Shown in pieces: positions 558 to 10,533 of a stretch of DNA of 64,000 nucleotides (the stretch's first letter is position 1; every line of letters begins with the position of its first letter). Source of the stretch: Prasinococcaceae sp. CCMP 1430 (lineage: Eukaryota > Plantae > Prasinodermophyta); contig RQSC01000005.1 of the NCBI GenBank assembly GCA_013416795.1, positions 326,733 through 390,732 of the forward strand. Direction: 5' to 3'. The notes under the pieces were generated by a model, which was given only the letters and a program-made list of their open reading frames with translations, made no database searches and was not told the origin of the DNA. The position numbers and the translations under genes are program-made.

Positions 558-1916
558 CTACCCCTCATCGCTGTCGGTGGGCGTCTCGACCATGATCTCC
601 GCGACGAGCTCCTCCAGGTGGCGTTCCTCGACGGCGAATCCGTGCACACTCTTCTCGAGGAGTTCCACGGCGCACGCGTCGGCGTCGTGCAGCCGGACGA
701 AGCGGCCGAAAGACAGCGGGCGGGCGGCCACCTCCTCGCGTGGCCACAGCGTGCGCGCGTAGTTGTCTGAGAGCTTGAGCATGAGCGGGTCCGAGCAGGC
801 GCGCAGCTCCTCCATGATCAGCGGCGGAATTATGAGGCTGTCGCAGCCCGCCAGTTCGCGCACCTCGTGGATGTTGCGAAAAGACGTCGGCGTCACCATG
901 GAGGGGACGCCCTCCTGGTGGTAGAGCGTGTAGAGGCGCTTGGTCCTGAGCACACCTGGGTCCTCGTGTGCGGGGTAGTGATCGCGAGCGTGCTCGGCCC
1001 TGTGCCAGTCGAGCGTGCGTCCGACGAATGGCGTCACGCGGCTCGCGCCTGCGTCGGCGCATGCGATGCCCTGCGCGAGAGAGCACACGAGCGTCATGTT
1101 GCACTGAACACCCTCCTTCTCGAGCGCCTCGCACGCCTGGATACCCTCCCAGGTCGCGGGCATCCGCACGCACAGCTTGGACGCGGCGTCCACGCCACGG
1201 CGTTCAAGAGCGTCCGCGAGCCCCATCGCCGCGTTGATTAACTCGTGCGTATCGAAGCTCAGCATCGGGTCCAGCGGCACAAGTACGCGGCCGTCGGCGG
1301 GCAGCACCGCCGCGAGGTCCTCTGCGAGGTCGAGCGTGAGCGCAGCAGCGATGGCCGCAGGCGACGCGCCAGCCTTGGAGGCGGAGCGCACCGCCTGGAC
1401 CAGGCGCGTACGCAGCTCGCCCTCGTCATCGCCCTCAAGCACGTCCTTGAGGTGCAAGGCGCCCTCACCGAGCTGGTGAGCGATGTCGTTGTGCTTGAGG
1501 CGCAGCTCGGGCATGGCCGCGGCGCAAAACTCCGCCAGTACGAGCGCGGGGTGTGCGCACGCGTCGCGCACCAGCCGTCCGCCATCTGGCGCTGCGAGTT
1601 CCTTCACGAGCGCCACATCGGCGGTGTTCGCGACGAGGCGCGAAGTGGTCGCCAGCGCCTGCAGCTGGTTGCTCGCGCCCGGGAGCGCCACACACGGCGG
1701 AGACGGCTCGAACGGATCGCACGCGTCCACGCGAGACGTTGCGGGCTCGGACGGCAGCGCCGGCTCAGAGCCCGCCGCGGCTGCGATGTGGCCGCGCGCA
1801 CGCGGGCGGCGCCCCCCCGGCGGATCGCCACGCGGGTGGTGCTTCCTCGGAGCTGGCACCGCCGTCGCTGCCGCCGCCGCCCGCGAATGAGTTAGGAGGA
1901 ACGCCGCGTGCGCCAT
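558..1916 (-). CDS. Transaldolase-family protein with degenerate active site and transit-peptide-like N-terminus
   Basis: Aligns by eye to TalB-type motifs: PATWEGIQACEALEKEGVQCNMTL, TPFVGRTLDW, EDPGV, SFRN. ATG chosen at 1916 (MAHAAFLL...). Confidence 0.85.
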   Translation of the reverse strand: MAHAAFLLTHSRAAAAATAVPAPRKHHPRGDPPGGRRPRARGHIAAAAGSEPALPSEPATSRVDACDPFEPSPPCVALPGASNQLQALATTSRLVANTADVALVKELAAPDGGRLVRDACAHPALVLAEFCAAAMPELRLKHNDIAHQLGEGALHLKDVLEGDDEGELRTRLVQAVRSASKAGASPAAIAAALTLDLAEDLAAVLPADGRVLVPLDPMLSFDTHELINAAMGLADALERRGVDAASKLCVRMPATWEGIQACEALEKEGVQCNMTLVCSLAQGIACADAGASRVTPFVGRTLDWHRAEHARDHYPAHEDPGVLRTKRLYTLYHQEGVPSMVTPTSFRNIHEVRELAGCDSLIIPPLIMEELRACSDPLMLKLSDNYARTLWPREEVAARPLSFGRFVRLHDADACAVELLEKSVHGFAVEERHLEELVAEIMVETPTDSDEG

Positions 1917-2362
1917 TCCCGGCTGCGCAGCAATGTCGCGCGCACGAATATAATCTCCAACAAGCGGCGCCCCCGCGCGTCCCGCCGATAGCGGCTGCGG
2001 CACCGCTTTGCCTGCGCCCCGCCCCCCCTCCCCTCCTCGCCGGCGCGCGCCCTTAGAAAGCAGGGAGTTGCCGAACGCGTGCCGCGTGCGCCGCGCCTCG
2101 TTGCGCGCCCGCCGCCGCACAGCGCGCGCGCGGTGCGGCCGGCGGCGGCGGCAGTGGTGGCCTCTGGGCGCGGGGCGCCTCGCCCTCGGCGGCGAGCCGG
2201 CGTGCGCTCTTACTGCCGTCGCAACAGCAGCAGCCGCAGCCACAGCTACCGCTGCAGCAGCGGCAGCGGCAAGAACGAGAGGAATCTATTTCCGATCGAC
2301 ACCGCCAGCTTGGGCAACGACGGGATGAGCGGGATGAAGGCCGAGGGCAGCAACAGCCGGCG

Positions 2363-3703
2363 ATGCGACTGGCCTTTCTGGTGCAGGTCGCGCGGCTACC
2401 CGACGCCGCGCGCGCCGCGCAGCTACGGCGGCTGCTCGCCCTTGTCTCTGACGGCGGCGCCAACGCGGTCGCTCTTCACCTCGACGCGAAGGCTCCCGAG
2501 GAAGACGTGCGCCGACTGCGCGAGGTGCTGCGCTCGCCCTCCACAGCAGCCTTGTCGATATCGTCGGCGTCGTCGCCGCCGCCGCCAGGACCAGGGCGCG
2601 GTCGCGCGGTTACCACGCGCGGTTTCAACTCCACAAAAGCGGCGCGGCGGGGTCTTCGCCAGGTTGATTCCTCGCGGGAGCGCGCGCTCGGCGAGGTCAT
2701 ACTGCTGAGGCGCTCTAGGGTGACGTACATGGGCATATCGATGGTTGACGTGACGCTTCGCGGCATCTCCGCGTTGCTCGCCTCCGGTGGCGATTGGCGC
2801 CACTTCATCAATCTCTCACTCGAAGACTACCCAACCATGCCCATGGACAACGTGCGGAGGCTACTCGCGGGCTTCTCGCCCCTCGCCAACTTCATGGAGC
2901 TCTCCCTCGGTCGCTTCGGCTTTACTAATGTCGTCATCGACCCTGGACTCTACATCGCTGACAGCGGGGAGCTCGAAGAGCACGGCTGGCGTGGGAGGCC
3001 GACCCAATTCTCGGTGTGCAAGGGATCCGCGTGGATGATCCTCAGCCGCGACTTCGCGCGCTACGCTGCCGGCGGCGGCGCCCTCGACATGGCGCCCGTC
3101 AACAAGCACAGCACCGCAACCATAGTCGTCAACGGCGAAGAGTACGACGGCTTTCCGCGCTCGCTGCTCCTCTATTTTGCGAACTATCCGAGGCCGGCCG
3201 AGTCGTACTTCCAAACACTCATCGCGCACTCGCGCTACGCGCGCACGCTCGTGCCTTTCCCGATGCGCTACGACTACTGGCCGCAGTGCGGCAGCGGCGG
3301 CTGCCAGCACCCGGCGGACCTGGGCATGAAGCATTTGGCAGGAATGCTCGAGGCAGCGCCGCTGTTCGCGCGGAAGTTCAAAGCGGACCCGAGCGCCTTC
3401 GCCAGCAGCGGCGATGAGCGATCGGAGCTCACGCGCTGGGTGGACGCACGCCTGCACCGCGGCGGCCAGGGCAACGCAACTTACCTCGTGGCCGCCCTCG
3501 CCGCGGCGGACACGTGGGTGTTCGACCCCGCGCGCGACACGGAGATTGCGTCGCCCGTGGTGCCGACGTCGTGCCACTCCAGCCTGGCCATCGTGCGCGA
3601 CGTGGAGCGCGCCTCGTACGCTGACGGGCGCTCCAGGGGCGCCAAGGTGGTCGCGCGTGACAGGAACGCGCTTGTGGTGCCCCTGGCCGGCCAGCGGGTG
3701 TAG
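2363..3703 (+). CDS. GT14 core-2/I-branching or xylosyltransferase-like glycosyltransferase
   Basis: RLAFLV...LHLDAK, DWRHFINLSLEDYP, KGSAWMILSRDF, ESYFQTL, FARKF. The frame is open without an ATG back to 2057, so the true N-terminus is unresolved. Confidence 0.8.
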   Translation: MRLAFLVQVARLPDAARAAQLRRLLALVSDGGANAVALHLDAKAPEEDVRRLREVLRSPSTAALSISSASSPPPPGPGRGRAVTTRGFNSTKAARRGLRQVDSSRERALGEVILLRRSRVTYMGISMVDVTLRGISALLASGGDWRHFINLSLEDYPTMPMDNVRRLLAGFSPLANFMELSLGRFGFTNVVIDPGLYIADSGELEEHGWRGRPTQFSVCKGSAWMILSRDFARYAAGGGALDMAPVNKHSTATIVVNGEEYDGFPRSLLLYFANYPRPAESYFQTLIAHSRYARTLVPFPMRYDYWPQCGSGGCQHPADLGMKHLAGMLEAAPLFARKFKADPSAFASSGDERSELTRWVDARLHRGGQGNATYLVAALAAADTWVFDPARDTEIASPVVPTSCHSSLAIVRDVERASYADGRSRGAKVVARDRNALVVPLAGQRV

Positions 3704-7713: not shown

Positions 7714-10533
7714 TCATGGTGCGCCTCCGCTTTCGAACGAGGCCACGACCGTGGTGTCGGTGCCAGGGTCGCCTGCCCGTGCGTCGACCTCCATCACCGC
7801 CTCGCCCCCATCCTCAAGCGCGCCATCGAGCATGGGCTCCACCTCGGCAGCCTCCTCATGCAGCTGGTCGACCAGATGCTCGTGTGTCGCAGCAACCTCA
7901 GCGTACTCCGGCCGGGCGAGCGCCACCTGTTCCGACGTGCCCGCTTCCGCATTTCGCTGCCGAGCCGAGCCTGGCGAACAGCCACCCCCCTCGACGTCGG
8001 CCGAACCCTCTTTCATCGGCACCGCCGCGGCCTCGCCGACCGCCTCGTTGCAGGCCGGACTTCCACTTCCCCCCGAGCCGCCGGCGGCGACGGGGTCACC
8101 CTCTACGAAGAAGCCGTCCACCAGCGCAGCATCTCCTAGCGGCGCGGCCTCCTCCCCGCTGACGGAAGGCCCCTCGCGTGCGGGGCGCTCCGCCTTTTGC
8201 TGCCCATGACCCTGGCACGGCCGCTCCCGCGGCTGCGCCGGCTCTTTGTCCTGCTGGCGCCCCTGGCGGGCCTCGGGCTGCGCGCCGGCAACCGCTTTCG
8301 CAGCCTCAGTGCCCCCAGTATCATCGGCGCGCGTTTGGGCGCACGCGTCAGCGCCACCAGCTGCAACGCGCGTGGCCTCCAAGCCCGCGCAATCCCCACC
8401 CGCCGCGGTCTTTGCGATCTCCGCCCCGGCGGCCTTCGCCTCGGCAGCCTCCTTCTTGGCGGCTTTCTTCGCCTCTCGCTGCGCCCTGCGCTCCTCCTTC
8501 CGCGCCTTCTGGCGCGCCTCGTGCTCCTTGCGCCTTTTCTTCTCCTCCTCTTCGGGATCATCCAGGGGAGGCATCGTGGGTGCCAGCAATTGAGTGGGCC
8601 AGGCGTCGAATATCATCACGGCGTCGGCGTTCACGAAGCACACCTTCACGTCAGCGTCGAAGCCGCGCGGGCAGCGCGCGCGCCAAGCGCGCAGTGCCGC
8701 GGGGCACGGCGCACACCCGCCGATGATTGCGAGCCGGAAAGCGGGCGCGGGCGAGTTGCGCTTGGAAAATTGCGCGTTCGGAAGATGCACGTCGAACAGG
8801 ATGGGGAAGCGCGCCAGCGCTTCCGACTCAGACTCGGTGAACCCGGAGTCGCGGTACGTTGCAGCGATCGTGGGAACAGCGCCAACCGGCTTGAGATGGT
8901 CGGAGGATGCAGAGGGAGCGCCCACAGCCTGGACGCCCCCGTGCAGCTCCCGCTCAAGCACACCGCGCTGCCCGGCCCACGATCGAGGCCAACGCAGCGA
9001 CCTCGCCCCGTCGCCGGGCGACGCGCGCGCGCCAGCGACTGCCTTCACGCCCGCGGCCGTATCGGCATCCGCGTGCGCGCACGTGACCCACGGGTGATAC
9101 TCCACTCGTGCACCTCCACGTCCGAGCACGCGCGGCCACCAGGTGCGGTCAGCAGGTCGCCTGCCGCATGCGGGTGGCGCGGGCACCTCGAGCGCGTGCA
9201 TCCAGTCCTCGGGCGGCAGCGCAGGTGGCACCGCCAGAGGCGCGCCGCTCGCGTCCTGCCGGGCCGGAGGCGGCATCTGCCGGCGCGCCTGCGCGTCGTC
9301 CGTTTCCGTCGTGGCGTTGTCCGCTTCGCAGCCCATGCCTGCGGCTGGTCTAGCGTCCGCACGCGGGACCTCAGACGGCGGCCCCTCGAGCGCATCGGCG
9401 ATCTGCGCACGCCGCACGATGTAGCCGTGCTTTATGAGATGTGCGAACGCATGGTACCACCTCAGCTTGAATCCGAGTCCGATCATGAGAGCGTAGACAT
9501 CTTGCACGGACATGAGCCAATCGCCCACAAACATGACCGCCACGGCGTTCTCCACCAAGAAGAGCGCTTCCTCGATGCGCAGCCAAGTGCGCCCGCCGGC
9601 CGAGTAGCCCATCGAGGTGAGCCACTTGCCCTTTGAGCTCGTGGCCTCGGCGCGGCAGCGGGAGGCGTCCCACACGAGCGTGATGAGCTTGCTTCTTGCG
9701 CAGCGCCGTGGCTCGCTGATGATGTCGTACATGCCCTTTGTGCGCGCGCGGATCTCCTTGAGGTCCGCAGCGAAGTCCTTTGGCCCGTCATGGTCGCCTC
9801 GTTTCTCGCCGCGCTTGAAGACCGACATGACATCCTTGGTAGTTTCGGGGTCCTTGCCCTCACGCAGCGCGCGCTTGGCGGCAGCACGGTCCTTTTGCGC
9901 GATGGCGTTCTTTTTGGCGGTCTTCGCGGCCTCCAGGCGCATGTACTTTTGCAGCTGTGCCTGTGCGACGCGGACGTTGTGCTCGGCGATGCGCTGCGCC
10001 TTGGAGCTCGCGGCGGCCGTCGCCGCGAGCACTGGGTCGGAGGGCGCAGCCTTGGCGGCAGCCTCGTCGCGCTCAGCGTCGCGGGCCGCATCGCGCGCAA
10101 TGCGCTCGGCGTCGCTCAGGCCGGCGTGCCAGCGCGAGAGTGGCTCGGCTCCGTTGGTGCCAGCGCTGGCGCCGCGATCCGCCGCATCGCCGCCAGCGCC
10201 ACCGTTTGTGCCGGCCTGCTCATTGTCGGTGCCGGCCGCCCCGGCCGCGCGGGCGCCCCCCCCTACCAAGAGCGCGTACAGACCGACTGCCGCCGCTCTG
10301 GCCGCGCCAAGCGCGCTCATCGCGGCCGCCGCGACGGGCGCAAGCGCGCCGCCCGCCGTGAACGCCCCGCTCTCGTCGATGCGCCGCCGCTTAGCTGCGC
10401 GCCTCCTTCCGATTTCCCCGCCGGAGCCCGCGTGCACGGCGCCATCCTCGTCGTACAGGAGCGCGCCCGGCGCCGCCTCGGCCGCCTCCTCCTCCCCCGA
10501 TCCTGAGCCCGCGCCCGCCGCCGCGGCTGCCAT
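7714..10533 (-). CDS. TSEN54: tRNA-splicing endonuclease subunit Sen54-like protein
   Basis: KGKWLTSMG...WLRIEEALFLVEN...SVQDVYALM...YHAFAHLIKHGYIVRR and C-terminal FDVHLPNAQFSKRN motifs; TGTAA (minus strand) at 7673-7677. Confidence 0.75.
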   Translation of the reverse strand: MAAAAAGAGSGSGEEEAAEAAPGALLYDEDGAVHAGSGGEIGRRRAAKRRRIDESGAFTAGGALAPVAAAAMSALGAARAAAVGLYALLVGGGARAAGAAGTDNEQAGTNGGAGGDAADRGASAGTNGAEPLSRWHAGLSDAERIARDAARDAERDEAAAKAAPSDPVLAATAAASSKAQRIAEHNVRVAQAQLQKYMRLEAAKTAKKNAIAQKDRAAAKRALREGKDPETTKDVMSVFKRGEKRGDHDGPKDFAADLKEIRARTKGMYDIISEPRRCARSKLITLVWDASRCRAEATSSKGKWLTSMGYSAGGRTWLRIEEALFLVENAVAVMFVGDWLMSVQDVYALMIGLGFKLRWYHAFAHLIKHGYIVRRAQIADALEGPPSEVPRADARPAAGMGCEADNATTETDDAQARRQMPPPARQDASGAPLAVPPALPPEDWMHALEVPAPPACGRRPADRTWWPRVLGRGGARVEYHPWVTCAHADADTAAGVKAVAGARASPGDGARSLRWPRSWAGQRGVLERELHGGVQAVGAPSASSDHLKPVGAVPTIAATYRDSGFTESESEALARFPILFDVHLPNAQFSKRNSPAPAFRLAIIGGCAPCPAALRAWRARCPRGFDADVKVCFVNADAVMIFDAWPTQLLAPTMPPLDDPEEEEKKRRKEHEARQKARKEERRAQREAKKAAKKEAAEAKAAGAEIAKTAAGGDCAGLEATRVAAGGADACAQTRADDTGGTEAAKAVAGAQPEARQGRQQDKEPAQPRERPCQGHGQQKAERPAREGPSVSGEEAAPLGDAALVDGFFVEGDPVAAGGSGGSGSPACNEAVGEAAAVPMKEGSADVEGGGCSPGSARQRNAEAGTSEQVALARPEYAEVAATHEHLVDQLHEEAAEVEPMLDGALEDGGEAVMEVDARAGDPGTDTTVVASFESGGAP

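Follow-up and report, generated by a model that had tools for sequence, protein, structure and literature searches.

The best-described transaldolase is TalB of Escherichia coli (subfamily 1; Protein Data Bank, PDB, entries 1onr, 1ucw and 1i2n-1i2r), in which Lys132 forms the Schiff base and four further residues are required for catalysis: Asp17 as general acid/base, Glu96 as the water-activating residue, and Asn35 and Ser176 as ligands of the substrate hydroxyls. Entry 1ucw is the trapped intermediate, and 1i2n-1i2r are mutants of those catalytic residues. The same Pfam family and the same barrel also comprise the human and mouse transaldolases (1f05, 2cwn) as well as fructose-6-phosphate aldolase and its short TalC-type relatives (1l6w, 1vpx), which are decameric, about 220 residues long and lysine-dependent. 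In the green lineage, plastid-type transaldolases such as those of Chlamydomonas reinhardtii (CHLRE_01g032650v5), Chlorokybus (Chrsp122S01804) and Prasinococcus capsulatus (P0399) keep every catalytic residue and are about 55-63% identical to one another. Here we describe a green-algal member of this family in which all five catalytic residues have been replaced. It is a TalB-type homologue of 452 residues, encoded on the minus strand at positions 558-1916 of a 64,000-nucleotide stretch of contig RQSC01000005.1 from Prasinococcaceae sp. CCMP 1430 (hereafter the window, meaning the whole stretch); the open reading frame (ORF) has no internal stop, and a EukProt record holds the identical 452-residue sequence. 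We lean towards reading it as a pseudoenzyme, that is, a dead paralogue of the green plastid-type transaldolase which selection has kept and which would bind a phosphorylated metabolite without converting it.

Set against TalB and the mammalian enzymes, to which it is about 30-40% identical, the window protein keeps six pocket residues and the motifs TWEGI, PFVGR, DPGV, SFRN and LAGCD, while it differs in the five catalytic replacements, in a change of Arg300 to His, in insertions of 7 and 30 residues and in an 82-residue leader. Fructose-6-phosphate aldolase and the TalC type are far more distant (E 1e-6 to 1e-11), and the window protein clearly belongs with the long, TalB-type enzymes. It falls into the clade of the green plastid-type enzymes, with 40-43% identity and an N-terminal extension like theirs.

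The central observation concerns the active site. Residues were assigned from the DNA codons and from HMMER and MAFFT alignments to TalB and to sets of 9, 88 and 287 relatives (Table 1). The four substitutions claimed by the sequence-only reading (Lys132 to Arg, Asp17 to Asn, Asn35 to His and Glu96 to Pro) are all borne out by the codons and the alignments, to which we add a fifth, conservative one at Ser176. Each of the five positions is identical in 88 of 88 aligned homologues, and among the 287 proteins fetched an Arg in the Lys132 column occurs only in the window protein's own 99%-identical cluster. As significant local Pfam and HMMER alignments begin only at about residues 172-200, the assignments of Asp17 and Asn35 have as their basis a motif-level MAFFT alignment together with the positions of the strands in the AlphaFold model, where the five replaced residues sit at the C-terminal ends of predicted strands beta1-4 and beta6. 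We also looked for a lysine that might stand in for the lost one. None lies near the catalytic face: even the closest candidate, Lys247, corresponds in the alignment to TalB Arg128, which puts it at the wrong, distant end of strand beta4. Two further apparent losses of the lysine, a Gln at this site in P0148 and P0240, belong to incomplete gene calls that begin at that very position, and are not credible. The window protein thus fails the defining catalytic features of transaldolase (Enzyme Commission number 2.2.1.2): the Schiff-base lysine, the Asp17/Glu96 pair and the Asn35/Ser176 pair. With the lysine gone, together with both carboxylates of the pocket and two ligands of the substrate hydroxyls, classical class I transaldolase chemistry, which proceeds through a Schiff base, appears very unlikely.

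The fold, on the other hand, is predicted to be intact. Residues 172-435 match Pfam TAL_FSA (PF00923) with 161.9 bits (E 2.8e-47; the gathering cut-off is 27), and HMMER aligns the protein with structures of E. coli TalB at E ~3e-47. An AlphaFold2 model built from an 89-sequence alignment reaches a mean predicted local distance difference test score (pLDDT) of 91.4 and a predicted template-modelling score (pTM) of 0.90, with only the 30-residue insertion scoring low, at 67-71. When searched with Foldseek, the predicted model matches mouse and human transaldolase (2cwn, 1f05) with a template-modelling (TM) score of 0.90 and TalB (1onr) with 0.86, at probability 1.00, in line with a transaldolase-type barrel.

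Such a concentration of changes at otherwise invariant sites raises the suspicion of an artefact, be it sequencing or assembly error, an unrecognised intron or bacterial contamination. The composition of the locus gives this some substance: GC content is 66.3% in the window, in keeping with the 66.8% reported by Li et al. 2020 for Prasinoderma coloniale (PMC7455551, Suppl. Table 7), and long chance ORFs are present in all frames at about 67-70% GC. Since GC-rich DNA gives long ORFs in every frame, the unbroken frame to which the sequence-only reading pointed, although real (452 codons without a stop), is weak evidence taken alone. What makes an artefact hardly credible is the recurrence of the same gene elsewhere. 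It is carried by 17 contigs from independent studies (Tara Oceans and other assemblies, and Logan runs), which together with the window resolve into 10 haplotypes from culture, Tara and other seawater samples; all are 1359 nucleotides long, all have the same five replaced residues and none has an insertion or deletion (indel). The contigs X1, X2 and X4 have the same codons at the replaced sites with zero differences; neither a Lys codon at 1164-1166 nor an Asp codon at 1626-1628, either of which would have spoken against the substitutions, appears in any contig or haplotype. The 30-residue insertion is crossed without a joint by X1 (1212-1748), X2 (1348-1651) and X4 (1372-1522); an intron hidden behind it was rejected on this ground and because the sole flanking GT..AG pair (1468/1395) would excise 74 nucleotides and break the frame. 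GC content at third codon positions (GC3) is 0.85 in the homologous frame, the protein groups inside a green-algal clade, and synteny is conserved in a related species.

The gene also appears to be transcribed, in culture and at sea. Two small transcriptome-like runs of the same organism (X1 and X2) yielded contigs colinear with 558-1748 and none over 1780-2445; that these runs are RNA is a guess, and their contigs show neither strand nor ends. Two seawater metatranscriptomes contain pieces of the gene at 719-874 and 1372-1671. We infer that the leader is translated as well, the RNA contigs extending no further than 1748.

Phylogeny places the origin of the protein within the green lineage. 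It is matched best by N-terminally extended transaldolases of the green lineage (Chlorokybus, 43% identity; Edaphochlamys, 40%), all of them catalytically intact. In a maximum-likelihood tree (LG+C20, 42 rows) it falls inside the Viridiplantae transaldolase clade (22 rows including the query, support 95/100), in agreement with a quick tree, and a sister position to Prasinococcus capsulatus is weakly supported (75/74). Its terminal branch measures 4.66, about eight times the median of 0.55, compared to 0.16-1.0 in the other green plastid-type enzymes. Because of this long branch and an odd composition, both flagged in the analysis, its precise sister group is uncertain; nothing in the tree points to a bacterial origin. 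One would expect such a protein to be a duplicate, accompanied by an ordinary transaldolase. A gene assigned to K00616 (transaldolase) is among the orthogroups unique to Prasinoderma coloniale (Li et al. 2020, Suppl. Table 6, PMC7455551). This is what a copy as diverged as ours would produce, and there may be two copies. An intact transaldolase of P. coloniale was absent among the best 120 matches of a green transaldolase query in a search that did not include the genome itself; a canonical one is present in the related Prasinococcus (P0399). Two candidates for the alga's own intact enzyme could not be assigned. The P0139 cluster has 66% GC and window-like codon usage but contains no culture-genome source, and P0324 (contig L023) groups with Prasinococcus but has 53% GC. 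The former is an intact, long-branched green-type transaldolase of 419 residues, which lies at L020:6001-7260 on a 44-kb marine eukaryotic contig whose codon usage has a cosine of 0.92 to that of the window.

A more serious rival to the pseudoenzyme is a dispensable, slowly dying duplicate that lost its function recently and has yet to accumulate disabling mutations. Its extremely long branch would suit such a gene, as would its departure from the family in 40 of the 101 columns with a conservation of 95% or more, and so would its restriction, as far as our searches reach, to one genus. Patterns of selection, however, point the other way. Across the 10 haplotypes, 11 of 282 synonymous sites in the barrel domain are segregating, as are 5-6 of 837 non-synonymous ones, which corresponds to a ratio of non-synonymous to synonymous polymorphism (pN/pS) of about 0.15-0.18 (binomial p 3e-4, or 6e-3 with a generous transition bias). 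Constraint is looser in the leader, where 4 sites segregate synonymously and 5 non-synonymously (pN/pS ~0.5), but indels are absent there too. The 220 nucleotides upstream of the start codon contain 24 columns with single-nucleotide polymorphisms (SNPs) and 26 gap columns, in contrast to zero indels in the whole coding sequence (CDS).

Divergence tells the same story over a longer time. When 1.84 billion representative sequences were searched exhaustively with HMMER, a single closer relative emerged, a 124-residue C-terminal fragment (P0131) encoded on a 1.6-kb metagenomic contig, L019, from a related alga. This contig is syntenic with the window: the convergent neighbour gene is shared, at a DNA identity of 87%. 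Over 140 codons, L019 and the window gene share 74% of amino acids, with a synonymous divergence (dS) of 0.66, a non-synonymous divergence (dN) of 0.16 and hence a dN/dS of 0.24, equal to that of the neighbour gene's 3' end (0.25). The two proteins have several derived states in common (MVTP before SFR, LIxPP and LWPRE). Homology ends abruptly at L019:296, immediately past the conserved LDW position, where sequence of lower GC takes over; L019:1-296 is either an intron missing from the window's intronless gene or the product of a rearrangement or break, and an upstream exon is not found on the 1.6-kb contig. Purifying selection on the transaldolase-like gene is thus supported by both polymorphism and divergence, and it fits a pseudoenzyme rather than a decaying gene. 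Neutral dN/dS combined with a lack of expression would have undermined the sequence-only reading; instead, dN/dS against the partial orthologue is low and RNA-type contigs exist. Given in addition the transcription in culture and at sea and the confident fold prediction, we regard a dying duplicate as quite unlikely. The hope that orthologues with the same substitutions would be found was not borne out: among the 287 proteins the 99% cluster remains alone in having Arg at the Lys132 column, and a word search, the exhaustive HMMER search and a fragment search with residues 200-305 returned no orthologue beyond that cluster and P0131/L019. A scan of metagenome contigs from the Joint Genome Institute (JGI) revealed no relative.

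If the gene is maintained, it may be maintained for a new reaction instead of for binding. A neofunctionalised enzyme would turn over a phosphorylated substrate without a Schiff base, for instance by isomerisation, epimerisation or hydrolysis involving Arg251 and His122, with selection acting on the new activity. Purifying selection is as compatible with this as the retention of the fold and of the pocket residues Asn154, Thr156, Phe178 (Phe297 in the alignments), Arg181, Ser226 and Arg228. Moreover, the replacements do not look random: with Arg for Lys and His for Asn, the pocket still has polar or cationic side chains at these sites. It has nevertheless been stripped of both its carboxylates, the groups that usually serve in acid/base catalysis, with Pro now in place of Glu96; the catalytic face offers no other Lys; and literature searches did not find a TAL_FSA member with non-Schiff-base chemistry. 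We therefore consider a new catalytic activity rather unlikely.

What the pocket does retain must be weighed with care. The sequence-only reading is right that the equivalents of Arg181 and Ser226/Arg228 are intact, the latter pair also in L019, but its use of this retention as an argument is weak because 40% of the conserved family columns have changed: the chance probability of keeping the three named phosphate-site residues is about 0.2. Overall, 5 of 11 known pocket residues are changed, so that the pocket has fared much like the remaining conserved positions. In sum, it has lost two negative charges, exchanged Lys for Arg and acquired one His, and is about two charges more positive than that of TalB. 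Judging from these substitutions, the pocket may suit a more anionic ligand. Outside the pocket, TalB Arg300, a dimer-interface residue, is His425 in the window protein and Ser in L019, which may change the usual contact between subunits; PDB entry 9qpk, an R300E variant, was among the Foldseek matches.

Taken together, an intact fold that has lost its catalytic residues, is expressed and is under purifying selection agrees with the non-catalytic pseudoenzyme of the sequence-only reading, and this is the account we favour, as somewhat more likely than not. The more specific roles suggested by the sequence-only reading, a sugar-phosphate sensor or a regulatory subunit of the active transaldolase, draw no support from the present results. 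According to it, a green-lineage plastid-type transaldolase would have been duplicated in the Prasinoderma lineage, and the copy would have evolved very fast, losing its Schiff-base apparatus through the five replacements listed in Table 1 while keeping the barrel, the phosphate clamp (Arg181, Ser226 and Arg228) and Asn154, Thr156 and Phe178, and gaining two insertions. Thereafter it would have been held by purifying selection and transcribed. The protein would be imported into an organelle, probably the plastid; such a location is plausible because the protein belongs to a green clade with N-terminal extensions and has an 82-residue Ala/Arg-rich leader. There it would bind a phosphorylated metabolite and not convert it. 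With two pocket carboxylates gone and Arg and His added, the more positive pocket would prefer a ligand of greater negative charge, for instance a sugar bisphosphate or a phospho-acid, and through this binding the protein could sense, sequester or regulate. Loss of activity, organelle targeting and ligand binding are the steps that we infer.

Several points weigh against this account. Retention of the phosphate site is, as discussed, not statistically distinctive; the reading of X1 and X2 as RNA is guesswork; and the polymorphism counts are small. The partial orthologue spans the C-terminal third only, so Arg251 and the other replacements may date from before or after the species split. Finally, the gene has so far been seen in one genus only, as a dispensable gene would be.

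A broader extension can be imagined. Besides K00616, the orthogroups unique to P. coloniale also hold the KEGG orthology entries for GPI, FBPase, PGM, RPE, GAPDH, enolase and pyruvate kinase (PMC7455551, Suppl. Table 6). Dead or diverged paralogues of sugar-phosphate enzymes with transaldolase, triosephosphate isomerase and ribulose-phosphate epimerase folds might form a lineage-specific Prasinoderma set whose members bind metabolites without catalysis and together regulate or scaffold the carbon metabolism of the plastid; the transaldolase member would read a bis-anionic sugar phosphate. We regard this as an improbable scenario.

The layout of the gene and its surroundings is summarised in Table 1. 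The divergent neighbour at 2363-3703 on the plus strand encodes a Core-2/I-branching-enzyme (PF02485) glycosyltransferase (E 2.9e-22). On the other side, the 130-nucleotide spacer at 428-557, between the convergent stop codons of the transaldolase-like gene and its left neighbour, has a single SNP in the 10 haplotypes; its near-invariance may reflect overlapping or shared signals of the 3' untranslated regions.

Table 1. Features of the transaldolase-like gene and its upstream region, in window coordinates; residue numbers on the left of an arrow are those of TalB.
Feature	Positions	Strand	Basis and remarks
Single-exon CDS, transaldolase-like protein	558..1916	-	452 codons plus TAG stop at 558-560; starts at first in-frame ATG
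N-terminal leader, residues 1-82	1671..1916	-	Ala/Arg/Pro-rich, few acidic residues, organelle-targeting-like; precedes first conserved family motif NQLxxL (alignment)
Predicted transaldolase (beta/alpha)8-barrel domain, residues 83-452	561..1670	-	Pfam TAL_FSA, AlphaFold2, Foldseek
Asp17 -> Asn97 (AAC)	1626..1628	-	X1, X2 and X4 contigs without differences
Lineage-specific insertion, 7 residues (110-116)	1569..1589	-	Between strands beta1 and beta2; alignment
Asn35 -> His122 (CAC)	1551..1553	-	Alignments, DNA codon, colinear contigs
Lineage-specific insertion, 30 residues (140-169)	1410..1499	-	Predicted helical, not an intron; alignment, pLDDT 67-71, colinear contigs
Glu96 -> Pro214 (CCG)	1275..1277	-	Spanned by X1 contig 1212-1748
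Lys132 (Schiff base) -> Arg251 (CGG)	1164..1166	-	Predicted strand beta4; X2 contig 864-1261 without differences; 10/10 haplotypes
Asn154 and Thr156 kept (Asn273, Thr275)	1092..1100	-	Alignments
Ser176 -> Thr295	1032..1034	-	Alignments; conservative change, absent from the sequence-only reading
Arg181 (phosphate site) kept (Arg300)	1017..1019	-	Alignments; inside kept PFVGR motif
Ser226/Arg228 phosphate site kept (Ser345-Phe346-Arg347)	876..884	-	Alignments; also kept in partial orthologue L019
Arg300 (dimer interface) -> His425	642..644	-	Alignment; conserved-column deviation list; Ser in L019
Divergent intergenic/promoter region, shared with Core-2/I-branching-enzyme gene	1917..2362	.	Highly polymorphic, with indels; no RNA-type contig over 1780-2445

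Full-text literature searches did not find a described transaldolase pseudoenzyme or other dead member of the family. Among the sequences compared, the one other TAL_FSA protein that we can credit with the loss of the Schiff-base lysine (Lys to Ser) is bacterial, P0231, from the metagenome-assembled genome GCA_965193605.1 (contig L021). Although it shares DPxLS, LVCSL and xP before SF with the window protein, its origin is independent: it is sister to a proteobacterial transaldolase (98/94) and no closer to the window protein than normal transaldolases are. In P0231, Arg181 has become Pro and Arg228 has become Gly, both of which are kept in the window protein. Its operon (L021:5001-6041, 8149-8802) includes genes for a sugar ABC transporter, a GATase1-like protein, an AAA_18 kinase-like protein and a 682-residue unknown protein, as well as a short FSA/TalC-type gene. 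The wider family showed other departures from the standard architecture. Three metagenomic proteins of 462-650 residues (P0129, P0279 and P0313) apparently contain two tandem transaldolase domains, and P0028 and P0406, one of them from an Elainellaceae cyanobacterium, are fusions of transaldolase with an EF-hand calcium-binding domain.

How far the finding reaches is bounded by two facts: dead-enzyme paralogues are common in general, and to date this one has turned up in a single genus. Within these bounds it has something to offer to the biology of both the family and the alga. Transaldolase is a textbook Schiff-base enzyme, and a constrained dead copy would be a natural experiment on the roles that its scaffold can play apart from catalysis. 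As for the alga, whose green lineage branches deeply and is common enough to show up in metagenomes of Tara Oceans and in metatranscriptomes from seawater, the protein is a candidate for a regulator that binds a metabolite.

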